Source: Marsupella aquatica
Lineage: Eukaryota > Plantae > Marchantiophyta
Length of the DNA stretch: 64,000 nt
Assembly (NCBI GenBank): GCA_973895155.1
Contig: OZ316899.1
Coordinates: 16,643,974 to 16,707,973, forward strand
Direction: 5' to 3'
The notes below the pieces were generated by a model. That model was not told the DNA's origin. It did no database searches and saw nothing but the letters and a program-made list of their open reading frames with translations. This document shows, piece after piece, positions 3,392 to 46,842 of this stretch; position 1 is the first letter of the stretch, and every line of letters begins with the position of its first letter. Made by a program: the position numbers and the translations under genes.

Positions 3392-3495
3392 CCAGGAATC
3401 ACTAGGCCAGTTTAAATGGTAAAATCTGGAGTATACCTTGGAAACACATTAGATAGTAACAAAAACAAGGAAAATATAAATAATTAAGGGTGACT

Positions 3496-6400: not shown

Positions 6401-7337
6401 TACTAAGGTGTTTCCAGGGTACACTCCTGCTTTTACCATGTAAACCGGCCTAGTGATTCTTGGCTAGGCATCACAGCTTGCATCCCTGGCGGCCAACTTC
6501 AAGGGTGACTTGCATGAGAAAGACGACCAGCTCGATCAGACTTATGCCAAGATGAACAAAATGGAGTCTGAGGTCGTAACGGAGCTCGACAAGGAGCTAA
6601 GAGCATCCCAGGAGGAGAGGGCTACCTTAAAGAAGGGATTGGAGGAAGCCCAGAAGGAATTGGAGGAAGCCCAGAAGGAGCTGGAGGAGGCGCGAAAGGA
6701 CCTGGACAAAACGCAGGAGGAGTTGGAAGAAAGCACGAGGAAGATGGAGAACTTACAGCGGCGGGCCGAAAACCAAACGGAGCGGCTGAAGAAACAAGCC
6801 GCAATATTTAAGTGCTTGGCTTCATCAGTTCCAACTCCAATTGGGGCAACCAAGTTGCCAGGAGTAGTACTGGCCAAAGGACAAGCCGCGACACTCGCAC
6901 CGGTACCGGAAGTAAGTGGCAAGGGGAAGGGACCAGCTGCCAAAACATGGAAGAAGAAGAAGCAAAAACCTTCTGGGTCAGGGAGTAACACGGCTTCTCA
7001 AGCCGTCATGACCACAGAGGAGAACTCAGCACCAACCTTAGGCAGGGTCACGGCAGAGGATCCAATTGTCCTAGAAGGCGGGGATGGCAAAGCCAAGGCC
7101 AGGACAATCAGTGATGAAGCCGGGGTACCGGATCCACCACTAGAGCATGTCGGGGATGCCGTAGCTGTATTGGAGGCCGTGACCGATGCTGAGGCCAAAG
7201 CCGAGGGTGGACCCGGTCAGGCCATGGGAGAGTTGATTGGGTTTGGGGCAGGTAATCTGTTAAAAGATGGACCTACGACAGTGGCTGCAAAGGAAGCATT
7301 GGGGGCATCCATTGACGATCAGTCACCGCTACCATGA
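3496..7337 (+). pseudogene. LTR-encoded accessory ORF of family A, copy 1 (deleted, split by insertion)
   Basis: ORFs 4030-4266, 4272-4613, 4517-5146 and 6510-7337 match the protein encoded at 14217-17938. Confidence 0.85.
5037..6475 (-). mobile_element. Internally deleted solo LTR of family A, inverted, inside another family A LTR
   Basis: Both LTR termini are present (TGTGGTGCG...GCATCACA), flanked by GCTTA/GCTTG (5-bp TSD, 1 mismatch). About 3.2 kb is missing at a junction near 5095. The empty site GAGCTTGCATCC is seen near 17090. Confidence 0.9.
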
Positions 7338-7921
7338 CAGTGGTGGAGGGCCGCTCCTTTTATGGAGGGCCGCTCCTTTTATGGAGGGCCGCTCCTTTTA
7401 AGGAGGGCCGACGTGGAGGAAGGAGGCGTGAGTGGGCAAGGCAGGCTCAAATCTCCAAGTTTAGGATTAGGATCAGGACCAGGAGGCGGCCCTGACACTT
7501 AGCTTAGTGGGATTGCGGTTCCACTGGTAAGAGCAACACTTGTACTCTTGCCTCGCTATACATAGGTAGATTCAGAAAGTAAGCAAGGGAGTGAGAGTTG
7601 GATGTGTCGAGCTGAGAGAGGTCTTAGCGGCTTAACCAAGCCTATTGGGGATCATTTCGGTGGCAGAATCCAAATATACCTAACAAGAAGGAGGGGAAGA
7701 CAAGGGAAGGCCTAGATTAGGCCGGCTATGTATCTCATGACCCGATGAAGGATCTGTCCAGTATATGTGTGTAAGATGTTAATAGTATTAGTAGAAGGAG
7801 GTTAGCAGCGTCCCATGCCACTAAGCCGCGAAAACGGCCTCGCCAAGCGCAAAACCTACGGGAATCGGCTTGTGAAGGGGGGTTTCTGGGGTTTAGGGAG
7901 CGATGGGACGCACCACATTTT

Positions 7922-7939
7922 TGGCGCTAGATGGAGGGG
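7922..7939 (+). promoter_or_regulatory. Primer binding site, probably tRNA-Asn
   Basis: TGGCGCTAGATGGAGGGG 4 nt after the LTR end. It is complementary, with one mismatch, to the recalled 3' end of plant tRNA-Asn(GUU), CCCTCCTTCTAGCGCCA. Confidence 0.75.
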
Positions 7940-7986
7940 GCATTTCTTAAGCCGTGAGATATGAAGTTAGGAAAGAAGCGTAGGTA

Positions 7987-10824: not shown

Positions 10825-10883
10825 TTGGATGAAACGGCTAAGAGGGGAGCTATACCCGTGATGGTGGATTTTCCTCAAGCGTT

Positions 10884-13800
10884 GTGGCAGAGCCGGCAGG
10901 ATCCACAACGCCGTCTATCATTGGCAAGCAATTAAATACCAAGGTATCGACATACAAGCCGATTACGAGGGCAGAACAAATTGAGGCCCTATTAGAAGTC
11001 GGGAGAGCACAGCGGCCTGACCCTCAGGAGGAAGAGGTGGAAGAGGTGGAAGAGATGCACAGACACAATCCAGAGCCGAGGCAGGAAGGGAAGCCGACTA
11101 CCAATTCAAAACCGAATAGACCGGCAAGGAGACAATCTGTGGGCACCAAGGGAGAAACCGACTCGGCTAGTACAGCCGAGATTCCAGTTTATGGAGGTAT
11201 GAGACTGGAGAGGCTGGAAGCCGAGCTGGACCCGAATTTGAAGAAGCAGATTAATATGATCCAAGCACGGCAATATCGGAAGCTCGACTTAGGAGAAGGA
11301 AGGGAACTGAACTTAGGGAGAGACCTAGCACCTGAGCTTGAGAAAGAGATCAATGACTTACTGATTGAATTTCAGGATGTGTTTGCATGGAGTCACCAAG
11401 ATCTAAAGGGAGTAGATCCAACAGTAGGGGAACATTGAATTGATCTCATGTTAGGAGCCAAATCATTCAGACAACCAATTCGAAGGATGAATCCTAAGTA
11501 TTCCCTGATGGTCAAAACAGAAATCGACAAATTAGTGGAAGCCGGATTCATCACTCCAGTCTTGCATTCAGACTGGGTGTCTCCAATTGTGATAGTACCT
11601 AAGAAAGCTGGACCCGATGGTCAACCCAAGATCCGTGTTTGTCAGGATTACAGAAAGTTGAATGAGGCTACGTTGAAAGATCATTTTCCTTTACCCTTTA
11701 CTGATATGGTGTTAGACATGGTAGCCAGTCATGAACTATATTCATTCATGGATGGGTACTCTGGTTATAACCAAATCAGGATTAGGCAGGAGGACCAAAT
11801 CAAGACGGCCTTCATCACGGAATGGGGGATCTATGTCTTCAATCGTATGCCGTTTGGACTCTGTAACGCACCAGCTATGTTTCAACGATTGATGGTGAAC
11901 ATTTTCCATGATTACTTGAGAAAGTTCATGGAAATCTTCATTGATGACTTTGCAGTATTCGGGAAGGCATCAAAGCATGCTAAATACCTAAGGAAGACCT
12001 TCATGAGATGCAGAGAGGTAGGTCTCAAGTTACATCCAGATAAATGTTTCTTTGGGGTAACAGAGGGTGTGCTACTAGGTCACAAGGTATCAAAGAAGGG
12101 CATCGAGATTGACAAAGGTAAGCTAGCAGTATGGCTTGACATCATGCAACCTAAGAACATAAAGGATGTAAGATCCTTCTTGGGTTGCATTGGGTATTAT
12201 CGCCGGTTTATTAAAGATTTTGCCAAACTAGCTTTACCATTAACCAACATGCTCAAGGCAGGCGCAGACTTTGAACCCACACCAGAAAGAGTAACAGCTG
12301 TGGTGGAATTAAAGCAAAAGTTAGTGGAAGCCCCAGTCATGATAGCACCAGACTGGAACAAGGAATTTCATGTCTTTGTAGATGTCTCAAGCTTCTGTAT
12401 CAGCTCAGTACTAAGTCAGTTGGATGAGAAAGGGAGGGACCATCCCATATACTTTGCAAGCCGTTAGCTTGTCGATGCCGAATGGAACTACTCCACCACA
12501 GAAAGAGAAGCATTAGGAGTCATTTATTCATGTAAAAAGTTTAGGCATTATTTGCTAGGGTACAAGGTAATCTTTCATACCGATCATGAAAGTTTGAAGT
12601 ACCTAGTAAATAAGCCGGACCTTACAGGCAGGGTAGCAAGATGGATTTTGCTATTACAGGAGTTTGACTACGAGTTAAAGATCAAACCGGGGAAGCTACA
12701 CGCCAATGCCGACTTCTTTTCAAGGATCACAGGTGAACCTGCCACGGATTGCATCGATGATTCCCCGACGAGGAGCTATTTTTTGTGGAAATAGCTGATA
12801 CATGGTACTCGGAGATTTTGCAATTTCTCAGCACGTCCAGATTACAGCCAGGGCTAACCCGAGAACAAGCCGCAGTCTTTCTGCGGAAGGTCAGACAGTA
12901 TCAGTACATTAAGGGTGTACTACACAGGTATGGAATCAATGGCACTTTTCAAAGGTGTTTAGAAAAGGGAGAGGTAAAACGAGTCTTACGGGCTATGCAT
13001 GGAGAAGAGGCCGGAGGACATTTTGCTCCAGTAACCACTTCTAAAAAGATATTAAATGCCGGTTACTGGTGGCCCACCTTGCACAAGGAAGTCTATCAGT
13101 TCATCAAACAATGTGATCCCTGTCAGCGAGCAGGAGGACCAAGGGCGTCTACAAGACATCCATTGCACCCTATTCTACCTCTGGCACCATTTGAGAAGTG
13201 GGGTATTGATTACATTGGACCGCTGAAACCATTAACCCATCCTCGGAGAAACAAGTATATAATCCTGGCCACGGATTATGCAACTAAGTGGGTGGAGGCC
13301 AGACCGACAACGAAGGATGATGCAATTACTACAGCTCAATTTCTGTATGAGCAGATCTTCACCAGGTATGGAGCACCCCTAGAATTAGTTAGTGATAGAG
13401 GAACCCATTTTCTGAATGATATAATTAGTCGTTTAAATGAGCAGTATTTAGTTAGACATAGGCCTACTACTCCTTACCACCCAAAGGCAAATGGATTGAC
13501 AGAACGAGCCAATGGGATTATAGGAAAGATATTGAACAAGACAGTAGCTCAGAACAAACTCGATTGGGGTGATAAATTGTTTGCTGCTGGTTTTGCTTAC
13601 AATTTAGCCTATAAATCCACCACTGGACATACACCCTTTTTCTTAACCTTTGGACAAGAAGCTCTGGTACCCATGCAACTTGAGATACCGACATTTCAAG
13701 TTACAATTGAGGAAAGAGTCTCAGAGGAGGAAAGCCTGAAAGAGCGAGAATATAGATTAGAAGCTTTAGAGGAGGCAAGAATGATTTCAGCCGAGAGAGT

Positions 13801-14137
13801 AGAATATAGACAGAATACCATGAAGCAGCAGTATGATAAAAAGTTGAAAGTAGTTAGTATTCACACAGGAGATCTTGTATTACTTTATGACAGTAGGTAT
13901 AGTAGGTTTCCAGGGAAGCTTTACACTCGCTGGTTAGGACCTTTCAGGGTATCAAAGAAGTTCCCCAACGGCTCTGTGCAATTGGCCAACATTACCGGAG
14001 AGGTGTACCCAGTTCGTATTCACTACGACCGCCTCAAGAAATACTATATGGACGAAGATGAAGTTGTTCGCGAGGACGCTTCACAATTAAGTGGGGAGCT
14101 ATGTGATGCCAAGCCAGGAATCACTGGGCTAGTTTAA
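10884..14137 (+). pseudogene. pol: Family A pol: reverse transcriptase, RNase H, integrase (a few stops and frameshifts)
   Basis: RT motifs RVCQDYRKLN, MPFGLCNAP and FIDD; RNase H; integrase HHCC and DDE core; WLGPF. RT-RH-INT order, with no chromodomain or additional RNase H seen, indicates a non-chromovirus gypsy. The frame ends 36 nt inside the 3' LTR. Confidence 0.95.
14089..14100 (+). promoter_or_regulatory. Polypurine tract of family A
   Basis: AAGTGGGGAGCT immediately before the TGTGATG LTR start; equivalent tract before 3380. Confidence 0.7.
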
Positions 14138-14216
14138 AGGGAAAAGGGAAGTGTACCCTAGAAACACCTTAGTATAGTTACATAAATAAGGAAAATATAA
14201 ACAATTAAGGGTGACT

Positions 14217-30102: not shown

Positions 30103-31412
30103 GAATTCCTGAAATTTTAGAGGAATTCAACGACGTGCTCTCGCAAAATCTACCTAAAGGTTTACCCCCGCGGAGAGAAGTGGATCACCAAGTTGAGTTG
30201 GAGTTGGGATCGGCTCCTCAAGCTAAAGCTCCTTATCGTCTAAACCTGAACGAGCAAATGATGTTGAAGAATGCCTTGGAAGAGTTGATCGACCAAGGGT
30301 TCATTTGCCCTAGTAAGAGTCCTTACGGGGCGCCCGCGCTGTTTGTGTCCAAAAAGGATGGTACTTTGAGATTGTGCACAGATTACCGGGCACTCAATAA
30401 GCAGACGGTAAAGAACAAGTACCCGTTACCTCATATGGATGACCTCTTTGATTGCCTCTCCGGGGCTAAGAAGTTTTCAAAGGTGGACTTGCGGTCTGGG
30501 TATTACCAGATCCGCATGGCTAAGGGAGACGAGTATAAGACCGCAATGCGCACAAGGTTCGGATCCTATGAGTTTTTGGTTATGCCGTTCGGGTTGTGTA
30601 ATGCAACCGCAATGTTCATGAAGATGATGAATACCATCTTTCATGACTTGTTGGACCAAGGAGTGGTCGTCTTTATTGACGACATCCTAATCTACTCGAA
30701 AACGTTGGAGGAACATGAGCAGTTGCTTAGAGAAGTGTTCTCTTGCCTTTGTAAGGCTCGTCTCTTTGCTAAACCTAGCAAGTGCGAGTTTGCGATAAAC
30801 AAGATTCAGTTCCTTGACCATACCTTTACCCCAGAAGGGATTACGCCTAGTCAGGACAAGCTTAAGGAGATCAAAGAATGGGAGCGCCCGTCCAATGTAA
30901 GGCAAGTTAGAGCCTTCTTAGGATTTACGGGGTTCTATCGGAGATACATGAAAGACTATGCGAGGATCGCGAGGCCCCTAAACGCGCTAACGTTGAAAAA
31001 CAAAGTGTTTGTGTGGACACAAGATTGCGAGTTAGCATTCCTAGAACTTAAGAGGTTCATGATAACGTCGCCGGTTCTAAAGTTACCTGAGATGGGGAAG
31101 CCGTTCGAGATTTGGACAGACGCAAGTGATTATGCCATTGGCGCCTGTCTTCACCAAGATGGGCGTCCTGTGGCCTTTGAGTCATGTAAGTTGGAAAATC
31201 ACTGGATCACACCGGAAAGGGAAATGTATGCTGTGATCTATGCGTTGAAGAAATGGGAGATTTACCTTAAGAACGGTCCCAAAGTGGTAATCCACACATA
31301 TAGCTCGCCAGCCGGGTACTTCAGTTCTAAGCCAAGGCTGAACCCCAAGGAAATGCGCTGGCAGATGTTCTTGGCGGATTTTGATTTCAAAGTCCACCAC
31401 GTTCTAGGGAAG
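30103..31412 (+). pseudogene. pol: Family B reverse transcriptase and RNase H
   Basis: GLPPRREVDH, SPYGAPALFV, DYRALN, DLRSGYYQ, FIDD and TDASDYAIGA. Cut at HVLGK by transposon D. Confidence 0.95.
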
Positions 31413-31960
31413 ATCAGCCTTTTCATTAAAAGTGTATTATTATTTTATTTATGTACATTTGGGCAATGAAAAATGTATTTTTGGGCGAGGAAAAGTGTAC
31501 ATTTGGCCAATGAAAAGTGTACATTTGGGGCTTTAAAAGTGTATATTTGAGTACATTTGAGTGAAAGAAACATATATTTGGCTTAAAAAGTGTACATTTA
31601 AGTGCAGTTGGTCTACAAAGTGTAACTTTGAGTGCAACAAAGTGTACATTTGGCCTAAAAAGTGTACATTTTCCTACCAACTCTTATTATAATCATTTAA
31701 AAGAAAGGAATGAATAGAAAAATATTTTTAATTATGCAAAAAAGCAAACATTCATATTCATAACATTCAAAAGTTTAGAAAATGAGGAGATAGTATAACT
31801 AACACTCAATGACATGGTCTCACATTAAAACTATTAGAATAGTAAATAACTAGTACGTAAGTTACTATGTTTGAATGAGTGTCGACTATTTACATAAAAA
31901 CTAGGTAAGTAACTATCTAAATTAATTTAATTATTATAGCTTCGCAAGTAACAACTAAGT

Positions 31961-34900
31961 CTACTTGTCCATCCTTTGGAGATAACATTGGACAGTTTGT
32001 AGAACATTTCGAGGAATCTTCAAACCTCTGCCCGCCATGTTTTCTTCTTTCATGCCAGATTTAAAACCATACATTGCAGAATTTGCATACTGCCAATGTT
32101 GAGCGTTCTCACCAAACCCTGGATCTCGTTCCCATGTCTTAGTGGACATGAAGCAGTTTAGATACCGTGCACTCTCAGTCACATCAAGTTTAGAGTGTTT
32201 AGGCCTCCACCATTTGACTGGAAACATTGGAGCATATTTTTGAGGCAGAGGAGGGTTTGTTGGAGATGTAGTTGGGACTTCATGCTTAGGGTCCACCAAA
32301 CCCAAAGCTCTCACTAACCAAAAATGACCTCCACCATTTTTATTCTCCCAATCATCCTCGGGTCAAAGAAATACAAAGTTCCTTTCATGGATATCCTGTA
32401 GGGGAATCCACCGTCCTTGTTCTCTCTCAGCTCAAGATCCAACAAATGGTGTTGCTTGATCTTCCATCTCTTCCAAGATCTCATTTTGAAGAGCCGTCAT
32501 CTCTGCATTCTCCTCATCTTCACTTGGAGGACCACTTTGTTCCGGTTGGTTGACCTTGTAACCAGTGCCGTGGTTAGTCTTAGGCCAAAATCTATTTTTC
32601 AAGGGAAATTGAGTACTTCCCTCCCCTTCTAGTGCGAGCCCATTTGTCAACAACTCCACAATTCTCTCCCAAAATTTCACAAGAGGAAATCTTTCCTTAT
32701 ATGCTATAGATGTCTCATCAGTGCAACTCCTTCTCAAAAAATCAAGGTACTTGTTAAGAAATGGGATAATCTCTTCAGATTTTTTGTGTATCTCTCCAAT
32801 GGATTTAGCTAAGGGCTCTCCACTAGGTAAAAGAAGAGAATTTGTTGTCAAATCTGTTGCCCAAATACACCTCCCTCCAACTGGAGCCCAAGCTTGCTTT
32901 ACATGGGACTTATACTAAAATATTGGTACATTATCTCTCATAGAGAAAATAAATGATACGGATTTTGAGTGACCTTGAATATCTTTAACTTTGAAAGTTT
33001 GAAGATATTCTTTGTAAAATGCAACTTCTTGTATCAATCTGGGAACTGGATGAATGCTCTCACATTCCCAAACCTTTGCCATAAGAGCAAGGAGAGTTGC
33101 AACTTCCTTGTGCTGAACTTGATATGATACCTTCGAAAAGAGTGCATCAACATCTTTGTGTGTATGACCAACCATTAGAAAAGACATTTGAACAGTTTCA
33201 AATACTCCTCTACTCACAAGCTCACTACAAAATGCCATGACAGTCTGGTTTTTGTTATCCTTTGCTGAGTTATCCATTTGCAGTGTTAGGTGCCTTGGCA
33301 AGGGCTTGAAAGATGGGCTGCCTTGTTCCCCATGCATGTCCCCTCCTTGATCCTCACCATGTTGGGTGGAGAGCGTCTCCGTCTGACTCTCGGCTGCATC
33401 TTCAAAACCAATATACCTATTCATTGGAATACTCTTTGGTTCCAAATATCCCTTAAAAAATGCATCAAAGTCAAGAAGGGCTTGAAAGAAAGGTCTATGA
33501 GGTTCCAAATAAAGGTCATCCAACATGTCACCTGTCTTGTCTCCATTGTACTCGTCAAGGTCTTGAAGACACTTAGCCAAGGATGTCACCGTGAAATCAA
33601 CATCTCTTGGCCAAAGGCCAGTGACACTAAAGTGTGCATAGACTCCTAGATTCCTTCCGTGGGTCAACATCCCTATGAGAGCAATAGGTAGTGGCATTCC
33701 ATGACCCGAAAGCGATTTAGGAGTACTAACCATTTTTGGAATCCACGTCTTTGCTTGATCCATCTTGTCGTGAATGATGCAAAGATATTCCCCTGGATAT
33801 TGCTTAGCCATCACTCGATGAGCATAGTAAACATATCTATGTGACATCTGCTCACAAAGATGTTGCGCTCGTTTTTCTTCAATTTCAGCATGCTCTTTTT
33901 TCCTTCTTTCTCGCATCAAACTATCTTTGTATTCACAACAAAGAGTACATTTGGCAAATGCACCATCTTTATGGAAACTGAAGTTTGCAAATGATTTGCT
34001 CCAAATCTTGTACAGAGTATTCTCTGTAACTGGAGGAAGCCCCTCTTCCTTCATCTTTGTTCTCACATCTTCCAAAATCTCCAACTTCTTGTAACATGCT
34101 GGAAGACGATACTCAATGAAGTCTGTCCCATGAGCCCCAGCATAAGGTATATGAGGCATGGGCTCTGCATTTTGAGTCAAAAAATCCTCCAACAGAGCTC
34201 GTGCATGCAAGGTATTTGTCCTTGTTTTCATGGAGCCCGTGTTTCCATGGAACCCAATTTTCCAACCCTCCACATATCTCCTTTTGTAATCATAATATTT
34301 CATGTGGCTAAAGCTATGGATGATTGCAAATGCATGTCTACATACGACCATACCCTTGAGAACATGGTGCCCCTTATCACGAACATCATCTTCTCTATAG
34401 TGGAAGAGGTTGAAAATGTGTGATGTTTTTGACTCGCTAGACATCCCGTGAAATTCTATCCGGATATCTTCTATGTCTTCTCTTGGCATAGTCAGACAAC
34501 ATTTCTGCTTGCAACAATTCTCTCTTTTAATTTCATCAATCGAAGCTTCCGTTGTTTTTGAAACTGCCTTGGTTTCCAACAACCTTCTCTTCTTTTCAAT
34601 CGGATCTACATGAGTCCTCTTGTTGAAATTGTATAGCCTTGTGCGCGGCATTCCCCTATCATTTACATTTGGATAGAGATCATCCCTATCCATCGTCTCC
34701 ATCCTCTCTGAACCTTCAACCAAAATGTCCGACAAAAATTTCCCGTTTGCAAGTAGTTTTGTTGAATCAATCCGCCACCGAACCAAAGTAATTACTCCCC
34801 TATGGAAATTGGAAAAGTATTGTGATTCCACCACATCTTTCACAGCAATCCCTACATGGTCCTCACCAAGGATTTCATCGTCAACCGCCGTCGTTTCTTG

Positions 34901-35750
34901 AGGCACAGTGATGGTCCCCGTGGCAACCCTATTGGTTTGATCTGAACCGATGTATAGTTCGACCAACTCTGACATCCAATTTGACCGTTGGAAATAGTCA
35001 CAATTAGTTTTAGAAATTTCAGCTGAGGGAGACTTCGCAACAAAACTCCGCTCTATGTTGATATCATCGCCCGCAGCCTTCTTTGAGAAACTTTTTCTAC
35101 TTCGGACATCTGCCACATCCCAGAGAACCCATGAGTCTTTTGCCTCGTCAATTGTTTCAGCCCTGCTGTGTTTGTAAGGTAAAACCCTACTCCCATGAAT
35201 GACATCAGTGACCCTCACACTGATCCGTGATTCACCAAGTAAAATGTTGTGAATCTTTCCGTTGGATTTGTATTGAAAACAACTCCAAGGGCTACACAAC
35301 ACCCAAAGATGAACATTTCAACCTCATCCCCTTGCCTCAGAGTGGTCGATGAGTCCTCCTCTACAATTGGATTTTTTTCCCAATTACTCTCCAGTTGATT
35401 TGAACAACTACCTAAACCCTAAACTCTAAACCCTAAACCCTAAACCCTAATGCATTTTTGAGAATTTATTATCGTTGATAGATATGCGCAAGACAAATCC
35501 CAAATAACGCAAGAATCAATGGCATCAAAAAGGTTTTCTGCCCGAGGCATTGGAAATGGTAGTTTTGTGGTTCGGTCAAAAACTTTCTCAATGAGAATGC
35601 CCATTCGATTCTCTCTCAACAATATCTTTTGAACACTATCTTGCGGGTTGATTTTTTGAATTGTCCCGCTTGCAACATCGTAACCACCAATTGTCAATAT
35701 CACATTGTCGCCTCTCAAAAATATTCCGGTCATTCCTACAACGTGTTCAC
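31961..35750 (-). pseudogene. Transposase of element D
   Basis: Main ORF 32915-35302 with KCTLC..H, IIHDKMDQAK, LQMDNSAKDNKN and FLMVGHTHKDVDALFS (DDD-type triad). Extensions 35440-35733, 32432-32851 and 31961-32314 lie across stops and frameshifts. Candidate splice acceptor near 35751. Confidence 0.8.
35411..35450 (+). repeat. Interstitial telomeric repeat (CCCTAAA)n
   Basis: About 5.7 units, one of them CTCTAAA, within the transposase N-terminal region. Confidence 0.9.
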
Positions 35751-35814
35751 CTGCACAATTTGAAATGTAAGGTATTAGTTAACAATGGTCCCAACTAGGA
35801 AGCAAATAGGTGTG

Positions 35815-36975
35815 AACCCTATCCAAGGAAAGTGCGCAAATAGGGATCATCCCCATCAAGCAAAATAATAGGTCCCTAAACAATCCTTATCTAGCCCTAA
35901 GATCCCTGATCCCTATTCAAACGTTGGATAGGGATGATCCTTGTCCAGACGGCAGATAGGTTCTGTCACTGTCCAAACAATGGACATAGATGATCCCTGT
36001 AAACGGCGGATAGGGATCATCCCTGTCAAAAATACGGTCAGGGATGATCCCTGTCAGAACGGTGGATAGGGTCTGTCACTGTCCAAAGGGCGGACACAGC
36101 TGATCCCTGTCCAAATGGCGGATAGGGTCTATCACTGTCCAAACAATAGACATGGATGATTGAAGGTCCGGATCACTTAGGATCACTCAACGGTCCTATC
36201 TGAAAGTAAAACCTTTCATATTGGGTTCCCATAAAGCAAATACCTCAAACGACAGAGAGGGATCATCCCTATCCAAATGGTGGACAGGGATCATCTCTAT
36301 CCAAAAGCCGGACAGGGATCATCCCTATCCAAACGGTGGACAGGGATCATCCCTATCCAAATGGTGGACAGGGATCATCTCTATCCAAAAGCCGGACAGG
36401 GATCATCCCCATCCAAACGGTGGACAGGGATCATCCCTATCCAAAAGCCGGACAGGGATCATCCCTATCCAAATGGTGGACAGGGATCATCTCTATCCAA
36501 AAGCCGGACAGGGATCATCCCCATCCAAATGGTGGACAAGGATCATCTCTATCCAAATGGTGGACAGGGATCATCTCTATCCAAAAGCCGGACAGGGATC
36601 ATCCCCATCCAAATGGTGGACAGGGATCATCCCTATCCAAATGGCGGACATGGATCATCTCTATCCAAACAGTGGATAGGGATCATCTCTATCCAAAAGC
36701 CGGACAAGGATCATCCCCATCCAAACGGTGGACAGAGATCATCCCTATCCAAACGGTGGACAGGGATCATCCCTATCCAAAAGCCGGGCAGGGATCATCC
36801 CCATCCAAATGGTGGACAGGATCATCTCTATCCAAACGGTGGACACACAATATTCTTATCCAAAAGCCGGACAGGGATCATCCCCATCCAAATGGTGGAC
36901 ATGGATCATCTCTATCCAAACGGTGGACAGACATCATTCTTATCCAAACAGCACATAGGGATGAACCCTATCAAA
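35815..36975. repeat. 28-bp tandem array of a palindromic unit
   Basis: GGACAGGGATCATCYCTATCCAAA plus AGCC/TGGT/CGGT; about 26 regular units at 36250-36975 and degenerate units at 35815-36160. Confidence 0.95.
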
Positions 36976-38344
36976 ACAGCTAACAGGTATGACCCTTGTA
37001 CGGAAAGTTAACCTCTACACACTAATTTAATGTTTGACCAAGAAAGGTTGGATTGAGATGATCCCAATCGTGAGTTGGGCTGGATACCCCAACCTTAAGT
37101 AACTTAGATATACAATTCCTAAATTTGATACCAATGGAATATTCTAGAATTGAGTTGAAAGTTACCTGTAATGGAAATGATTCTTGAACACAAAACTCAC
37201 TTAGTTTATGTTATCAAACCAAGTAATAAAATACTTTGTTGAAGGGGTAGTTATCAGTAAGCTGGTAAACTAAATGCTTCAGGGGTGTGGAAGAAATTAA
37301 AACTAGATGTTCTATCTAGAAAACAAGAGTGGCTCAATGGGGCTCCGTAATGAACGGACCTGGTTGACAGACTGAATGACAATCTAGAAATGAAAATACC
37401 AAATGAGGAGCAGCCGGACCAGCCCAAGTATCTTATACCATTTGTTCAAGATTGCTCTTATGGATAAGGCAATGCGTGATCAGCCTTAACCAGCGGCGGA
37501 GTTTAGGGTCGAGTGGATGAGGTAGTCCACGCCACACAACAAATTTGAGCGGCACAATTTTAGGGCAGCCTTGTGATTAGGGTTTGCCTCGCACGGCTGT
37601 TTGCCTCGCCTCGCACCTCGGCCTCCCACGTGTTGTGCCTCGCCTTCCACCTCGGCCTCACCTTGGAGGGGGGGTAAAGGAGGCAAGAGGTCCTACTTGG
37701 GCCTCATTCTTCTTCCCTCCTCCCTCCGCTCCTCCTCTTCTCCGCTCTTGCGCTCCTGTGCTCCTCCGCCTCATTTGCTTCACTCCGCCTCATTTGCCTC
37801 ATTCACTTCACTCTCCTCCTGTGCTTCACTCTGCTCCTCTGCTTCACACTAAAGTTTTTGCCCTAGCCGCCACGTTTAGTGCCCTAGATCTAACGCTTTG
37901 TGATCCTCCACGTGTCCATATGGCCATGTGTCACAAGATGGATCCATCTAGACCTATTCATGTGTCTTTGGTCATTGAGCCAATAGAGGAGATAGACCTC
38001 TCCTCCATTGAGGATGTGGTCGACATGGCCCTTGAGGATTCCAGAGCCTTCCAATTGCTCAATCCAAGTGAGTATCTTGGTAACAAGTTGAATATTTGTG
38101 CAGTGGACAGAGATCATCTCTGTCCAATTGGATAGAGATGATCCTTGTCCAAGTAGAGTCCAAGTAGAAGATAGTGATCTTTATTAGGAATTGGATAGAG
38201 ATGATCTCTGTCCAAACTGAGGACAGAGATCATCCCTGTCCAATTGGATAGGGATCATCTATTTCCAAAATGACGATAGAGGATGTCCAACCAGAGGATC
38301 GAAACTGTTCTATCAGAGGATGCTGAGGATCTTTATTTGGAACT

Positions 38345-38613
38345 GGATAGAGATGATTTCTATCCTCTACTTGGATAGGGATGATCTCTGTCCAATTCCT
38401 AATAAAGATAATCTTTGTTTGATCAGAGGATACTGACGATCTTTATTAGGAATTGGACAGAGATCATCCCTATCCAAGTAGAGGATAGAGATCATCCCTA
38501 TCCAATTGCTAATAAAGATCGTCAGTATCCTCTGATCGAACAAAGATTATCTTTATTAGGAATTGGACAGAGATCATCCCTATCCAAGTAGAGGATAGAG
38601 ATCATCCCTGTCC
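38345..38613. repeat. Near-perfect inverted repeat (arms about 130 bp) built from the same palindromic motif
   Basis: 38345-38475 is the reverse complement of about 38483-38613 with few mismatches. Confidence 0.9.
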
Positions 38614-40334
38614 AATTGGATAGGGACCATCTCTATCCAAACTGTGAGAAAACCTCATCTTTGTCGATTACAAATTAAGATTTTCCAAACTAATATGCAT
38701 GGATGAGACTATTGTAGGGAGCAATCTAAATGGATTGAAACCAGCAATTTCAGAATCAGATTGCTCCGAGGGAGTCTTGTTGGAGCAGAGCAAACCAGAT
38801 TTTCATTGGGGTCTTGAGTTCTCTAGAGTTGATTTTGATTTCCTTAGCACGTCAGAGAGACGGGATCCCATTTTGTGCATAAAGGTCAGAACAGAAGATC
38901 AAGAGACTCTTGTACTCGGACCTGTAGTCTTCATTGGAATTGAAGGAAGAGGGTTTGTTTCCGTCATTCTTGAGCTCCATGAAAGGATACGATGGGTTAA
39001 GCTACATCTACCATCAAAGGCGTATTCTTCAGAGTTCAATGTTGAGTGGTCTGCTTTTGGAGAACTTGGCGTGATGGCAATGGGCTTTTTCCCTAAGTCG
39101 TATTCAACTCAAAAGGTGATTGCTGGAGTGAAGGGGATTCTTCCACTTGAATCATGTATGGGTTTCAATATGTGACGCTGAATATCCATAAACACCAAGG
39201 GAATTATACATTTCCAGTGACATGGATTTTAAATAATTTGCTCGACAAGGCAGGATTCCTATCTTCAGAATCAGGTGTTTGCCTTGACAAGAAAATTGCA
39301 TTTGCAGAGGAGTTTGCGATGGATAATGCAAAAAAGTGGGTAGAATCATTACCCAAGCCTACAAATGTTGCACCTGTAGCGGTGAACGAGCTTCCAGTAG
39401 TTGTTAACAAAGAAGTTCCCAAAGAAGTTCCCAAACCTAGAAAAATATCTCAGGAGACAACAACAGGGACTGCAGGAACAATGGTTGGGACAAGCACCAA
39501 ACAAGTGGTAGGGAAGCAAAGACTAAGAGAGAGGAAGGGTCACGAGAAAATTGAGACATTGCCAAAGGAACCCGAGAAGAAGCCAGTAGCGAAGAAACAG
39601 AAAACTGACAAGTTTTATTTGCGGTCAACCCCTACAGACGTACAGATGCTCCTAGAAGATGAGGGAGACAAACTTGATGCCTCTGAGGAGAAGAAGGTCT
39701 TAGAAGGAAATGATGTTCTCCAGAGAATAGAGTAGTACTATACTTTTGGGATAAATGAACTATTTTCTATTCCAGTGGAGAATTGTGCCTACACCTGCAA
39801 GATTATGTTACAGGGATGCTCAGTAGTACCCATGTGAAGCACATAGCCAAATCCATGGTCAAAAACCCTAGACATGAACCTCACGTTGCGGACCTGCTTC
39901 CTTATAGTCCAAAGCTTAGAAAGTTGCTCCATTTTGACAGCACGTAGAACGACCGTAAAGACTTTCTTGCAGGAGTGAAGAAAGGCGAGATTGGTTTCTT
40001 TGCCATCATTGGGCAACATTTGGCTAGGGCGGCCAAGTGGGTTCTCGAATGGGCCAAAACTGATGCCAAGCTCACAGTGGTGGCAAAAAAGTTAAAATAC
40101 AGGAAGTCTAGATTATTGTCAGACCTTACACCATCGGCTATATTGGTTGAGCACTCAATGAGATCAAATGCCATCAATTCGACGATGGTGTTTCAATCGT
40201 GCTTCAAAGATACAATTGTTCATGCAAGGAAAAAATTCCTTGAATGCGGAGGACCAAGAAAGCCAAAGCACGGGGACAACAAGTCAAACGCCCAAGAGAA
40301 TCAAAAATTTCAGGTGAGAAACATTTTTCTTGTT

Positions 40335-40748
40335 TGGACAGAGATGGTCTCTGTCCAAGAGTGTGACCGTCCGTTACATTGATTTTAGTTCAATATATTT
40401 CTGGTTATGACTTGGATGGAGATGGTCTCTGTCCAAGAGTGTGATCGTCCATTCTAGAGATTTCTCTTCCTTCTACTTTTGGTTATGACTTGGATGGAGA
40501 TGATCTCTGTCCAAGAGTGTGATCGTCCATTCCAGAGATTTCTCTTCCTTCTACTTTTGGTTATGACTTGGATGGAGATGATCTCTGTCCAAGAGTGTGA
40601 TCGTCCATTCCAGAGATTTCTCTTCCGTTTACTTTTGGTTATGACTTGGATGGAGATGATCTCTGTCCAAGAGTGTGATCATCCATTCCAGAGATTTCTC
40701 TTCCTTTTACTTTTGGTTATGACTTGGATGGAGATGGTCTCTGTCCAA
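40335..40748 (+). repeat. 78-bp intronic tandem repeat (about 5 copies) carrying the palindrome variant TTGGATGGAGATGATCTCTGTCCAA
   Basis: Units start at 40403, 40481, 40559, 40637 and 40715, within intron 40314-40820. Confidence 0.92.
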
Positions 40749-42072
40749 CAAGCAAGTGATAGTTTGTTGTCAAATCTCATTGATTGTAGATAACTTATTT
40801 TCCCCTAATTTTGACTGTAGGATTATTTGGCATTGGCAAGGATGACCATGGGGAGAAAAGACTTGAAAAATGTATATTGGTTGCTCTTTGCCAAGAATGA
40901 TCTTTTCAAGCTCTGGCAGTTAGTGTGCCAAACGTGGATTGATGGACATCTTCCTGATGGTACACAGGGAAACAAAAGGTCCAAAAAGGGTATAACGGTC
41001 GCAATGTTTCGTTGTTTTGATGGTGAAATCTCAAGTAGAGATTTGACCAGAATTTTGAACAAGGTGAAGTCAGGTCAACTTTTATTGAAGAAGGATTCGA
41101 CAAATAAGTCAGATGTTCCAGCAATGGAGGACTTTACAAAGGAGGTGAAGATATTGATCAAACTGAAGTCTCTTATTGGAGATTACTACTTCAAGAAGGA
41201 TCCAAAAAAACTTCCCAACAGATAGTGATTGGGTTAAAGTAATTGAGGTCCTCCCATTGTTAGGTGCCGAGTTGGAGTTGAACACGTGCCGAAGAGCGGC
41301 TGGTGAAGTATGGTTGACAAATTTATTGAAGTCTAATCATACAAAGGAGAGTGAGATATTGCCAATGACATTGGTGATGCGTCTAGATGATATTTAGTGT
41401 CAAAAGTTTGGCGGTGGGACAAGTTCTCGGACCCAACCGTGGGTCACATTTTTTAGTAACAACCTAATGAAGATAGTGGATCCGGAGTCGTTGGAAGAAC
41501 AATCTCCAACATGCTCTCTTGCAATTTTTGATTTCAGCCGACTTCAACGGAAGGAGTGGACCGAAGCAGAGATTTTGGTACTCTTCCAATACATAGTAGA
41601 GCTACCACGGAATCCCACCATTGTTGTGATGATAACTGTCCATCCGGGTTACCTTGTACTGAATGTCCTAAGCGCTCTTCGTAAATTAGGACATTCAAAA
41701 ACTCTGACTATTCACATTGAGTATGGGAGTTATTACCGAGATGATCAACCTCACCCTCACGACTCATGTTGGAAGGGAGGAATAGAAGAAGTTATCTTTG
41801 CGGGAATTTCTCGCGAAGAGAACGTCAGCTGGGATGAAGTGTTCAAGCCCAACCAGATGAAGCCAAAATGGGTGTACGGTGAAAAGGATACTGATTTTGT
41901 GGTTGAGAAGGTCAAGGGAAAGGCAAAGGACGCGGACGAGGAGTCATTACATGAAGATCTAAGAAATATGATGACCCCAGAAGAGGCGGCAATACTTCTG
42001 CACATGGCACCTCGATTTGAGACGGTCGGCGCTTGGGGTGGGTGGGTGAATCCTCACGCCAAACCCACACGG

Positions 42073-42921
42073 TGTTGCGAGAACTTAAAGTTAGGGCTCC
42101 TCGGGCAAACTACGCATTTCTGGCTGCGATCGGGATAGGTGACAAGCACTTTTCGGAGCGAACTCTCACTCCTTTATATTTTTTACTTTTCTCACAAAGG
42201 TTACAATAGGTGCCCTCAAGTAAGCTTGCCCGCAAGAGTCTGGTAGCTGGCCCTACGGCGGGCCACTACCTCTAACTTGTCGGGTAGAACTCCTCGAGCG
42301 ACTAACTACTCAAAATCTGACGGAAAAACTATCCTCCTTAGCTCACAAAACCAAAAACTCGACTAGCTACTCCACTAGTCTAAAACAGCTCGCACGGAAC
42401 TCAGGCCTGGACCAACGAGGCTCTGAACTTGAGAAATCCTCGCCTGGATTGACAAGACTCCAAACTTGAGAAATCCCCGCCTGGATCAACGAGACTCCAG
42501 ACTCGAGAAATTCCCCGCCTGGATCAAAAACTCCCCACCTGGATCAAAAACTCACTCGGAACTCCAAAACCACCGCACAACAGTCAAGTTCCGCAGAACG
42601 GAGCAGAACTCACAGAACGCAACTCAATAGATCTCAATAGACAACCGCCAACCTCAATGAGCCGACGCTCAAGTCTTAAGTAGCATAAAAAACCCAACCA
42701 TCCAGCCTGAGCCAGCTGCCAGCTGCCAGGCTCATCCAAACTCCAAGCCTGGTGACTCACCCAAACACCAAACCTGGTGATGACGAGTCACCCAATCGCC
42801 AAACCTCAATCCATCCAACCAAGCAGCCCCTCCGAGTCAGCATGCACGCAACCCAACCGGGAGGCATCGCCCTTCATCCCCTATAAAAGCCATTCCTGAG
42901 CCGAAATCTTTCGGCACGATA
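42073..42921. mobile_element. Probable solo LTR of another family inserted in the methyltransferase-like region
   Basis: TGTTG...CGATA (likely from CGACA), flanked by ACGG/ACGG. Removal restores the frame KPTR|MIQK. Internal 36-bp repeats at about 42425-42550. Confidence 0.75.
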
Positions 42922-44250
42922 ACGGATGATCCAAAAGATCATCCAAACATTGTTCGAGCCGGGGGATTTGATTCTTGACTTTTTTTCTGGCGGTCAAGTG
43001 ATGAAGGCATCCCTTTTTTCTCAACGTGAATGTTTGTTTATTGTGACTCTCAACATGAGAGACATTTTGTGGAAGCATATGCTTCGTTCCTTTGTGAGAA
43101 GGTTCCCACCATCAAAGATCGTTATGATCGCTATGTCGGAGGAAGTTCTAGACATTGGGAACCCTCTTCTGCCGTTGTGCTATTGACGATGAATCAGATG
43201 GTGATCAAGAAGATGGAGCTGACCAATCAGTCAAAGACAATGGGCCATCGGAGGGGGCATATGTGAAGAATTTGGATGACCGAGTTGGCGAGGGTGAAAA
43301 TATTGACCTTGTGGAAGACGATATGATTGTTGGATCTGCACCTTGGAGTTCACCAATTACAGATGTTGCCCCCATGGGCCCCTACGAGGGCCCGTATGAT
43401 GATAACTTGGATAGAGATGGTCTCCATCCACAATTGCCTGGACAAGAGATGGAAGTTGATACGTTTGAAAAACTGTCTTCACAACAACCTTCTCAATCAA
43501 GGTGCAAAGAGGCATGGTGAATCCAATGAACTCGACACATTGGGATTGAGACCACAACCCATCCAAATAGCTGACATTCCCGTGAATGAAGCAAGTGCAT
43601 CCACGACTGCTGACAACCAGGCAGGTGCTTCAATTTGTCCCGATACACTCTTTTCCGCTTCTGATGACAAATTGGTGTTTGTTCGATCACAATCAAGAAC
43701 CATTATCCTTCCACTCTCAAAAAAGAAAGGGAAGAGAGTAGGATCAACTGGATATAAGTCACTTGAATATGATTGTCGATGTTACGTGTGGCAAAGTGGA
43801 CCCGATGTAGGAACTGAAGTTGCATTGGATGCTGCTCAATCAATTTTGAACAATGACTCGTTCAAAAAGCACAAGAAAGATCCAACTTATAGAAGTGGAG
43901 AATTGGGATTGATAATTCCGGTTTGGTCTGCACCTTATTGGATAGAGGAGAGTACCTCCGATGTCAATTATGAGATCCAACAAGAGCTCGGTGATGATAT
44001 CTTGATTGATGAATATGGATCTCATTGTTAGCCAAGGTCTAGATTGAGCCATGTGACCTTATCAATTTGATATAATATAGTCTGTATAATTATACTTCAA
44101 GTTTAACAATTAGAGCATCAATATCAATATCCATCTCCTCTTTACGGTTTCTCAATGAATACGGTCAGTATGCAGGATTGACAGAGATGATCTCTATCCA
44201 AACTTCAAATGTGGTTTTTTCTCTAAGATTGGTATTTGTTGCACTTGCAG

Positions 44251-45287
44251 AACCAAGACCTTGTTCCATCAAGCGCAAATTGCTGATTTTGGATCTTAAC
44301 AAAATACTTTGGGATTCAGTTGAATTCCAAAGCAAGGGAAAATCCAGAAATGTTGTGACCCCAAGTGGAGTGCATTGGGATAGAAAAAATGGAATTAGTC
44401 GCATGTATACAGAAAGGCCAGGGATCCATGAGTTTCTAAAGTTGGTTTTTGACCGATTTGACGTTGCAATTTGGACATGTGCTGGGGTACAACAAACAGT
44501 GAAAATGTTGAACATGATGTTCACTGCTGAGGAGAGATTGAAACTTAAGTTTGTATTCACACAGGTGGAAGCCTTTGACACAGGCATTCAAAGGCGTGAC
44601 ATTACAAATGGAAAGGCAAATCTGCTACTGAAGGATTTTCGGGTGGTATGGAGTGGATTTGGAAATCTATATGATGAAACCAACACCCTCCTTGTGGATG
44701 ACTCCCCCCTTAAGGCATTTGCCAACCCAAGCATGACCGGACTATTTCCAGTGCCCTACACGCATGCCAATTGTGGGGATAATTTTCTTCTTACAATTCT
44801 TTGGCCTTGTCTTGATAAACTATCACATGCAAGTGACATTAGATGTTATCTTCTTCTTAACTCTCCACTGTGGTCTCTATTGCACATAAAGAGAGACAAG
44901 GTAAAAAATGAAATTACTTATGATCAACTTAGTAAGAGATGCGCAACAAAAATTTGGAAGTCACAGTTTACGCATAGTGTGTTGGACCTCAATAGCAATG
45001 AGATTCCTTGGAACGTGAAGCATCGTAGATGTAGTTTACGTCCTGAGGCAGAACTTGATGATGCACTTGTCACCTCACTTGCTAAAGCATTTGTAGGACG
45101 GGACTATTCAGGTCCGTATAGAGAAAATCCCAGACACTTTTTGCGGGAGATTATAGCCATTAGGAACAACACCACCAAGTTTCAGCTCCCTGAAGATAAA
45201 GGTACTTGCAACCGTGACACTAGGGTAGATAGTAAAGGAGACAGGGGCACGTGCTCACATACACATTGTAAGGAGCAATTTGTTTAG
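44251..45287 (+). CDS. FCP1/SCP (NIF)-type HAD phosphatase-like domain, last exon of the cargo region
   Basis: KLLILDLNKIL, RPGIHEFL..FDRFDVAIWT, LLKDFRVVW and NTLLVDDSPLKAFANP; candidate acceptor TTGCAG ending at 44250. Confidence 0.85.
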
Positions 45288-45696
45288 AGATCTGACTCGT
45301 GTTAAGCCCCTTAGATAGAAGAAATACATTGTAAATTTGGAGATAATTGTATATTATTTTATAATCTATATGGAGTTATGTCATTTTGTTCACACATATT
45401 CAAGGGCTTCTTTGTGCTGAAATGTTTTTATAAGTATGATCTCTATCCTACTATTCTTTGTGAATTAATAAATAATGATCTCTATCCTATTATTCTTTGT
45501 GAATCAATAAATGATATAATATGTATTATTTATTAATATAATACTAATATGATTTGGCCTATAAGGTGTACATTTAGAGACCAAAAAGTGTACATTTTGG
45601 TTTCTTAAAGTGTACATTTGGGGACATGAAAGTGTACATTTCAAGACTGATTTGTGAACAAAAGAAAATACACTTTTAATGAATAGGCTGATGAAG

Positions 45697-46412
45697 ACAA
45701 ATGCGGCAGCGGACGCATTATCGCATAAGGACCAACATCGGGTCAATGGGATCACGATGCTCGAATCCGAGTGGCCAAAGGTTCTAGCCGCAGCGTATGG
45801 GGATGACAGGTTAGCTAAGGAATGGCAAAGCAATGGGGGTAGCCAAGGCAAGGTAAGGCATGTATTGTTGGGGTTGGATAAGACGCATAATGTCTAGTTA
45901 TGGCAATACAAGCAGAGGCGTGTGTACATACCGGAGTCTCTAAGGTTAGAGGTTCTGCAAAAGTACCACGACTCGCCCTCGGGAGGGCATGGAGGACAAG
46001 CCGCTACGTATCGCAGCATGTCACGAGATGTGTATTGGCCGGACATGAAGCAATCGGTCCTTCAACACGTGCAAAGTTGTAACTCATGCCAAAAGAACCA
46101 AACGGTCTATAGGGCAAAAGGAGGACTACTACAACCCTTACCAGTAGCTGCGGCTCCATGGGAGTCTATCTCCATGGACTTCATTGTTGGGTTACCTGAG
46201 TCCCACGGCAATAACTCCATCTTAACAAATGTGGATCATTTTTCCAAGATGGCGTATTTCTTGCCTACTCCAAAGATGGTTTTGGCCCGAGAGGTTGCCA
46301 ATCTAGTATTTGACAATGTCTTCCGACAATGGGGATTGCCGTTGCATATCCTGTCCGACCGCGATACCAAGTTCACAGGCCATTTTTGGAAGGCGTTGTT
46401 CCGGTTATCCGT
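45697..46412 (+). pseudogene. pol: Family B integrase, 3'-truncated
   Basis: HDSPSGGHGG, YWPDM..CNSCQ, PWESISMDFIVGLP and SDRDTKFTGHFW; similarity stops before the catalytic E. Confidence 0.9.
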
Positions 46413-46842
46413 TGTGAACTGGTACAGGCAGCTGTAGCTACCTTTGTGACTTGTATCCTAGTTTCACTCCTCTCGGCCTCTTAAGGATAAAGTCGGATTG
46501 CGTTGGTGCTAGAGGTTGTTGGGCGGCCGATTTTCTTTTTGCGAGTGGAAGTTGACGGTGCCCGCCCTACATCTATGGGCGGGCTAGTTTGAACCAAAGG
46601 GGAGCGCCCCAAGGGGAGGACAATGGGTTCGATGAGTTTGGAGTTAGCTTACCCGTTTGGACTGACATCCTACTTGGATGAGTGGGATAGGTTGGAATTT
46701 CCTAAGTTTGGAATGCGCATACAAACCTGGTTTGCATCAGCCTTATGGGCAAACCATTTGTTACCTCATAAAATTTTCAAGGCCCAAAGTGGTCTAGGCG
46801 TGTTGGAACGTTTACTGAGGTCACGCGAAAGTGACCATTTTT

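Follow-up and report, generated by a model that had tools for sequence, protein, structure and literature searches.

To our knowledge, VANC of Arabidopsis is the only transposon system known from experiment to recognise and reprogram its own copies. VANC motifs are private to a family, lie in introns and upstream regions, and evolve as tandem repeats (PMC5735166). A like role has been suggested for accessory genes of the ParB type in the transposons of algae, for which no target has been defined. The stretch of 64,000 nucleotides analysed here, from the liverwort Marsupella aquatica (contig OZ316899.1, positions 16,643,974 to 16,707,973; hereafter the window), contains a Sola-like DNA transposon of 14.28 kb at 31413-45692, called element D in a preliminary description. 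This element carries a transposase gene, a divergently transcribed accessory gene and a phosphatase gene, and all copies of a 21-25-bp palindrome found in the window. We think the chances slightly favour a reading in which these family-private palindrome arrays are sites bound by a dimeric protein encoded by the element, with the accessory protein as the likeliest binder.

The preliminary description likened the palindromes to the VANC-bound repeats of VANDAL elements, which are MuDR-type transposons of Arabidopsis (PMC5735166, PMC10398659). The likeness holds for the pattern of the motif. In both systems a short private motif lies chiefly outside the coding sequence of its own element, in accessory introns and upstream of the transposase, is amplified in tandem with fast changes of copy number, and differs between related families. 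It does not extend to the genes, as the liverwort element is of the DUF7869/Sola-like type with a 4-bp target-site duplication (TSD), and no open reading frame (ORF) of the element matches a VANC-type family in Pfam. The VANC motif is a 9-bp oriented word rather than a 21-25-bp palindrome, and a few of the liverwort sites fall within coding sequence. For VANC, binding and hypomethylation have been shown; in the liverwort, binding is a prediction.

Two algal systems and one bacterial system offer further comparisons. Sola1-1_Ec32 of Ectocarpus, 21.5 kb long, has a divergent accessory gene encoding ParB-like and DNA-methylase domains (PMC12477816); with regard to green algae, that paper refers to Iyer, Abhiman and Aravind (2011). 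Like the Marsupella element, it is a large Sola-type element whose accessory gene lies on the strand opposite the transposase and encodes a PF01555-type methylase domain preceded by a ParB-like segment, and binding and modification of its own element were proposed for its accessory protein, much as the liverwort protein may bind the element that encodes it. However, no palindromes are reported in PMC12477816, the methylase is predicted to be active there whereas motif IV is replaced in all liverwort members, and the liverwort element has an added NIF phosphatase gene; the likeness of the two accessory proteins is one of layout. PAG3 of the red-algal Plavaka elements (EnSpm-type) is ParB-like at a weak HHpred level and has inverted-repeat arrays beside its gene (bioRxiv 10.1101/2025.02.11.637652). 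Here, too, tandem arrays of inverted repeats adjoin the gene across families and binding to the protein's own transposon was proposed, but the partner domain is a 2-oxoglutarate (2OG) oxygenase instead of a methylase fold, the transposase belongs to another superfamily, and neither a positional map nor coding-embedded sites are described. As in bacterial ParB/parS, the liverwort palindromes cluster near a gene whose protein may have an N-domain of the ParB type, an arrangement that implies recognition by a dimer. Bacterial parS sites are few and 16 bp long, whereas 54 palindromic sites of 21-25 bp, longer and far more numerous, are found up to 6 kb to either side of the accessory gene; there is no ParA, the ParB-like segment of the liverwort protein is a candidate ParB domain only, no helix-turn-helix (HTH) was identified in that protein, and partition is not something that a transposon within a chromosome obviously requires. 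A literature search, which was not exhaustive, found no such system described in liverworts or other land plants. The kind of system has already been proposed; new here are the co-varying palindromes, the conserved map of their sites and the sites embedded in coding sequence.

The palindrome is abundant and sharply bounded. Its half-site TTGGAYAGRGAT, allowing one mismatch, has 77 matches in the window against 1.82 expected (the largest count in a shuffle was 6), and these span 34669-45489 only, all within the element delimited by its terminal inverted repeats (TIRs). A scan of the window for the full 21-mer GGAYAGRGATSATCYCTRTCC with up to four mismatches returned 54 sites, 21 of them exact, from 34671 to 45448. 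The 49.7 kb of the window outside the element hold several other transposons and no copy, so that the earlier statement that the motif is absent outside element D holds across the window; the only two palindromes of 10-1-10 geometry in that DNA are unrelated to the motif. Among 50 sites, TT-GGAYAGRGATSATCYCTRTCC-AA is informative, and positions beyond it have background information content. Since the flanking letters are unlike between the three repeat formats, the shared unit is the 21-25-bp palindrome itself. At its degenerate Y and R positions the motif departs from a perfect palindrome, GGACAGGGAT-S-ATCCCTGTCC, by C>T and G>A transitions, which would represent deamination decay of an old, probably methylated copy.

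The sites in the Marsupella element, none of which is assigned a strand, are the following.

35815-37070: 28-bp palindrome array with about 33 sites, between the divergent genes and upstream of the first recognisable transposase exon
38103-38640: 12-13 palindromes clustered as inverted repeats, within the predicted intron 1 of the accessory gene
40334-40748: 78-bp repeat, 5.3 copies with 93% matches and one palindrome per unit, in the intron after the ParB-like exon
34671-34691: single palindrome within the transposase coding linker, reading M-D-R-D-D-L-Y-P
43409-43429: single palindrome in the region homologous to the accessory protein's disordered linker, reading L-D-R-D-G-L-H-P
44179-44201: single palindrome in the spacer from the accessory-gene stop to the phosphatase ORF
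45437-45489: two half-sites in a 39-bp repeat, 3' of the phosphatase gene in the right subterminal region

The three formats named in the preliminary description are thus all recovered, as are its single copies, located at 43407, 44179/44190, 45439 and 45478. It had placed nearly all copies in intergenic or intronic DNA, which is right for most of them; two, however, lie in coding sequence (34671 and 43409), and it had missed the full site at 34671-34691 and a degenerate copy at 37050. The 28-bp array proper occupies 36258-36948 (24.7 copies), and a degenerate part with 28/56-bp spacing starts at 35907. The first intron of the accessory gene, with GT at 38068 and AG near 38716, is predicted only. 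The largest arms of the inverted-repeat cluster within it are 135 nt long and 93% complementary, and 38300-38625, taken as RNA, is predicted to form a near-perfect hairpin of about 135 bp (-224 kcal/mol, z -27). The 78-bp array is assigned to an intron because the exon junction between QKFQ and DY, which matches the junction in the homologues P0002 and P0162, is supported by the continuous product P0162.

The closest protein in public collections comes from the liverwort Calypogeia fissa, at 49% identity. The C. fissa locus L001 contains a complete element (1530-14197) with the TIR ATCAGAGTATTCATTAAAAGTGGA at both ends, near-identical to that of the Marsupella element, the TSD TTCT, and a subterminal repeat, GTGGACATTTGGG, that is nearly the same and found at the same places. 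By tblastx, all coding parts of the two elements are collinear at 40-69% identity and the non-coding DNA is unalignable. The C. fissa palindrome, GTCGCCTCGAGAY-N-RTCTCGAGGCGAC, or GCCTCGAGAY-N-RTCTCGAGGC with its variable positions, differs from that of Marsupella; it occurs in all four C. fissa loci fetched and is confined between the TIRs in L001 and L006, where both TIRs are in view. A variant palindrome, GGGTAGAGAT-S-ATCTCKACCC, lies near the phosphatase-side terminus of L001 (1765-1953) and L006 (15498-15567), and L002, an mRNA-like contig of another relative's transposase, has GGGTCGAGAC-W-GTCTCTACCC in its 5' leader. The half-arms GGAYAGRGAT-S (Marsupella), GCCTCGAGAY-N (C. fissa), GGGTAGAGAT-S and GGGTCGAGAC-W thus have in common the 10-1-10 geometry and the core GAGAY-N-RTCTC, and differ at arm positions 2-5.

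A more divergent case is found in Riccia sorocarpa, where P0166 (locus L022) is an accessory-protein homologue with 23% identity, annotated as 'DNA methylase N-4/N-6 domain-containing'. A third palindrome, of 20 bp with the arms CTTCGGGACG and CGTCCCGAAG, is repeated there with a 28-bp period in the same intron (10865-11020), and further palindromes occur at 9786-9824, 11529-11548 and 13335-13354. No DUF7869 transposase was found within 10 kb on either side of this homologue; the array occurs with the accessory homologue and no such transposase, which argues that the palindromes travel with the accessory gene. Divergent ORFs upstream in L022 (1127-6441, minus strand) have no Pfam match and may be an unrecognised transposase.

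Coding matches among the Marsupella element, L001 and L006 served as landmarks for matching intervals, and palindromes fall in the same seven or so intervals in all three. The coordinates below refer to the window for Marsupella and to the respective locus for the others.

Upstream of the first transposase exon: Marsupella 35815-37070; L001 8585-9730; L006 6860-7372
5' part of the accessory gene: Marsupella 38103-38640; L006 8786-8956 (5 sites, in 35-bp direct units)
Intron after the ParB-like exon: Marsupella 40334-40748; L001 6175-6241; L006 10695-10750; Riccia L022 10865-11020
Spacer before the phosphatase gene: Marsupella 44179; L001 3197-3354 (5-6 half-sites); L006 13236-14322 (about 10 sites)
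3' flank of the phosphatase gene: Marsupella 45437-45489; L001 1765-1953; L006 15498-15863
Transposase coding linker: Marsupella 34671-34691; L001 11011-11031; L006 5586-5606 (the relatives read G-R-D-G-L-D)
Accessory-protein coding linker: Marsupella 43409-43429; L001 4370-4390; L006 12532-12552 (the relatives read G-R/Q-D-R-L-E-A)

The intron after the ParB-like exon also contains a repeated 21-mer in L008, and a relic of the palindrome near 33365 in the Marsupella element stands opposite L001 12308 and L006 4288. The coding-embedded sites read in frame as x-R-D-x-L-x-P, and P0001 and P0002, annotated proteins of C. fissa, contain the peptides. Codon choice in these linkers seems to be constrained by retention of the DNA motif.

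Because palindromes occupy matched places, including places within two genes, in elements whose non-coding DNA is otherwise unalignable, they are not what would be expected of neutral satellites. The comparison supports the view that the motif has the behaviour of a recognition site that is specific to its family and under selection. The preliminary description had suggested selection for the binding site of a dimeric protein and had pointed to related families; the collinear relatives and Riccia do carry palindromes of their own at matching places, and the positional conservation combined with different arms lends that suggestion support of a comparative kind.

The architecture of the candidate binder is best seen in P0162, a continuous product of 1219 residues from an mRNA-like contig, which has the ParB-like, helical, methylase-like and C-terminal parts in one chain. 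In the window the ParB-like exon has stops and frameshifts, and the accessory-gene exons were searched piece by piece. An AF2 model was built for P0162 residues 240-940 (701 residues, alignment of 20 rows), with a mean predicted local distance difference test score (pLDDT) of 63. In this model the methylase domain resembles beta-class N6/N4 DNA methylases: CcrM was matched with Z 15.6 (218 residues aligned, root-mean-square deviation 4.7), M.MboIIA with Z 14.8 and M.RsrI with Z 14.5, the Foldseek E-value was 6.8e-06, and the fold type is that of CcrM, M.RsrI and M.PvuII. On the strength of the model, then, the accessory protein has a beta-class DNA-methylase fold, a fold that reads short palindromes. 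The Pfam family N6_N4_Mtase matches around motif I with E 0.0019 in the window and with E 1.9e-3 to 3e-6 across members. Motif I (D-F-F-S-G-G) is kept, while the canonical motif IV (D/S-P-P-Y) is absent in every member seen and is replaced by D-F-[STAG]-R in close homologues, which makes methyl transfer by the accessory protein doubtful. The ParB-like segment contains a conserved motif, S/T-G-Q-H-S-A, which we take to resemble the DGQHR signature of the ParB clan and treat as a lead only. An Atlas feature score of 0.91 for the ParB_N cluster, behind 0.95 for DUF3723, is likewise a lead only.

The remaining features of the element are listed here, with the genes that the site map refers to.

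31409-31412 and 45693-45696, no strand: left and right copies of the TSD GAAG, read from the sequence
31413-31438, plus strand: left TIR ATCAGCCTTTTCATTAAAAGTGTATT, matching the reverse complement of 45667-45692 at 25 of 26 positions
45667-45692, minus strand: right TIR, pairing with the left TIR
31451-31671, plus strand: left subterminal repeats of about 22 bp, core GTGTACATTT
45558-45641, plus strand: right subterminal 22-bp repeats, core GTGTACATTT
31961-35733, minus strand: transposase pseudogene, with a DUF7869 DDE-type core and N-terminal TNP1-like repeats
37920-44031, plus strand: accessory gene, decayed, recognised by tblastx collinearity with L001 and by the homologues P0002-P0010 and P0162
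39727-40379, plus strand: ParB-like segment of the accessory gene
40821-41222, plus strand: helical region of the accessory gene
41398-42135, with a motif I piece at 42923-43036, plus strand: methylase-fold domain of the accessory gene
Ending at 44028, plus strand: C-terminal domain of the accessory gene
44178-45287, plus strand: NIF/FCP1-type (HAD) phosphatase, the third gene (Pfam NIF, E 1.6e-14)

When the element and one GAAG are removed, the reading frame of a gypsy pol gene is restored (L-G-K-T-N-A-A-A-D-A-L-S). This host is a Ty3/gypsy pol with reverse transcriptase and RNase H to the left (30135-31469) and an integrase-like ORF to the right (45922-46437), and the insertion point is a conserved ...ADALS... 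stretch. The 4-bp TSDs (GAAG here, TTCT in L001) and TIRs of 24-26 bp fit the Sola superfamily; Sola elements were reportedly found by Bao et al. in 2009 to make 4-bp TSDs. The element is called Sola-like on its 4-bp TSD and its architecture, not on a profile match. L001 and L006 have the same layout as the Marsupella element, in which a minus-strand transposase gene and a plus-strand accessory gene are divergently transcribed.

The transposase core matches Pfam DUF7869 with E 2.7e-40, and 3643 relatives of it score an E-value of 0.001 or lower. Three in-frame stops lie near 32915, 32431 and 32365, and the full-length relative P0011 (1250 aa) aligns across them by tblastn (35284-31970, 43% identity). 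With stops in both the transposase and the accessory gene, this Marsupella copy is dead. A heptamer repeat (35411-35450, 5.7 copies by TRF) lies between two N-terminal transposase ORF pieces. The core GTGTACATTT has nine exact copies in the window against 0.05 expected, at the two element ends only, and its repeats run in the same plus-strand orientation at both ends rather than inverted. Subterminal regions are the usual place of transposase binding, and as this different repeat fills both of them, its copies are the natural candidates for such binding.

In the accessory gene, the methylase-fold ORF and the motif I piece are set apart by about 0.8 kb (42135-42923) containing tandem repeats of 37 bp and 20 bp; this DNA has no counterpart in the tblastx map of relatives and either is intronic or was inserted later in this copy. 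The phosphatase gene is present also in L001 (2055-3053), L009 (4047-5132) and L006, and lies 3' of the accessory gene in every element with that region in view. That the phosphatase ORF might be a C-terminal exon of the accessory protein was considered and rejected, as all homologues end with ...DEYGSF before it. A Pfam scan of the element's ORFs gave only DUF7869, a weak N6_N4_Mtase and NIF, with no ParA gene, and the same holds for L001.

We propose that the palindrome would be the family-private cis-recognition site of a Sola-like family of cut-and-paste transposons in liverworts, bound by a symmetric dimer of an element-encoded protein. The likeliest binder would be the protein transcribed divergently from the transposase, composed of a ParB-like segment, a helical region, a methylase fold of the beta class that lacks motif IV, and a C-terminal domain that is conserved. 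With sites spread over the region between the divergent genes, two accessory-gene introns, the spacer before the phosphatase, the 3' flank and two coding linkers, such a reader would cover or label only the element that encodes it. Binding would tune the element's own transcription or chromatin, perhaps through VANC-like anti-silencing, self-marking or recruitment of the co-encoded phosphatase. Tandem duplication would make new sites, giving the 25-, 28-, 78- and 110-bp formats, while the outer arms would drift between families around a fixed core GAGAY-N-RTCTC and the 10-1-10 geometry. The binding of the sites by a protein, the identity of that protein and the effect of its binding are what we infer from these patterns.

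Several observations weigh against this proposal. The ParB N-domain has no Pfam match at E up to 10 in the window pieces, DndB of the ParB clan appears at E 0.015 in one of six aligned members as a weak lead, and a PDB profile search with the ParB-like segment gave chance matches only. In AF2 the segment has a pLDDT of 47 when modelled as 150 residues and below 50 in the 701-residue model. No HTH was identified in the accessory protein, and the helical region (model residues 200-400, pLDDT 75-93) gave no convincing match in a search whose list was filled by the methylase domain, so that this region was barely tested. The copy in the window is dead and its sites are in transition decay, and hence they are no longer under selection there; slippage alone can also enlarge arrays. 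L009, a more distant relative of 5.5 kb, has no palindrome in the part covered. A metagenome scan with the 21-mer gave nine single matches, about the number expected by chance for 32 variants in a collection of this size on a rough estimate, together with a 63-bp satellite of 11.7 copies on a Copia-bearing eukaryotic contig (L017 3506-4243; L012 1-520). This satellite holds an identical 21-bp core, GGATAGGGATSATCCCTATCC, inside a longer palindrome, so that the D family is not alone in having this sequence. None of the metagenome matches shows protein or DNA similarity to the element, and the likeness of the satellite may be convergence or mark an unrecognised relative; the scan has no bearing on the Marsupella genome.

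Other explanations have to be set beside this one. The transposase might itself bind the palindromes through its N-terminal TNP1/TnpA-like repeats, in which case they would serve as an internal transposition enhancer or as an operator through which the divergent promoters are autoregulated, by analogy with Spm TnpA, the AtMu1 transposase and the Mu internal activation sequence. We hold this to be unlikely, though several points favour it: the biggest array is immediately upstream of the transposase gene, a relative's N-terminus has PF03017 (TNP1/En/Spm, E 2.4e-08) in tandem copies, a palindrome stands in the 5' leader of the transposase contig L002, and transposases can act as sequence-specific transcription regulators (bioRxiv 10.64898/2026.08.24.746577). 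However, it is the other motif, GTGTACATTT, that fills both subterminal regions, no palindrome lies near the transposase-side terminus in the Marsupella element or L001, and the Riccia array lies in an accessory homologue whose 20 kb of flanking DNA contain no DUF7869 transposase. We give somewhat less credence to the idea that the arrays are functionless internal minisatellites, produced by repeated amplification of a slippage-prone palindromic unit, or, as a variant of the same idea, that only their RNA is of consequence, the inverted-repeat hairpin feeding small-RNA silencing. The three periods, the copy number that varies between copies and the dead state of the Marsupella element would all suit such an origin, and the predicted hairpin at 38300-38625 would suit the variant, as does the fact that tandem repeats in transposon non-coding DNA are known targets of RNA-directed DNA methylation (PMC10398659). 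Against both the origin and its variant, the same intervals are kept across families, single sites persist in the coding linkers of two genes in three elements, and geometry and core are constant where the arms have changed; the long hairpin, moreover, is peculiar to the Marsupella element, the corresponding C. fissa interval consisting of 35-bp direct units.

The preliminary description's comparison with parS/ParB, and its view of GATC as a possible methylation target, lead to a further alternative that we judge very improbable: a true ParB/parS system with CTP-dependent clamp loading and spreading, or methylation of the central GATC by the methylase domain. The palindromes do cluster by a gene with a DGQHR-like motif, the DndB and ParB_N leads exist, the methylase fold is clear in the AF2 model, and GATC is found in 41 of 47 sites of the Marsupella element. 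But the lack of any significant ParB match, the lack of a recognised ParA gene, and the tens of sites per element, each of 21-25 bp, all speak against ParB/parS. For methylation, motif IV is missing from all homologues. The frequency of GATC, correctly noted at the outset, is an automatic consequence of GAT-S-ATC; it falls to 49 of 77 sites (64%) in C. fissa and to none in the Riccia palindrome, and GATC as the point of the motif was rejected on these counts.

Recognition of the palindromes by a protein of the element itself, most likely the accessory protein, stays our preferred explanation. A bolder extension, which we offer tentatively and with more doubt than confidence, is that the palindromes, the ParB-like protein with its catalytically altered methylase fold, and the NIF phosphatase, of the RNA polymerase II C-terminal-domain type, may together form a self-recognition and transcription-control module carried by transposons in land plants. 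A dead DNA methylase would then have become the sequence reader of the 21-bp palindrome, co-evolving with its sites such that each family addresses only itself, and would bring the phosphatase to the element's own divergent promoters. If that is true, the coding-embedded sites would mean that selection at the DNA level overrides codon choice.

The liverwort family supplies defined candidate targets, namely three mutually different palindromes of the same geometry, together with a conserved site map and natural full-length protein sequences from relatives. With targets so defined, the hypothesis becomes a simple binding experiment that has specificity controls built in. If it is true, modules of this kind would be placed in land plants, and the family would provide an example of a DNA-methylase fold retained without its catalytic motif.

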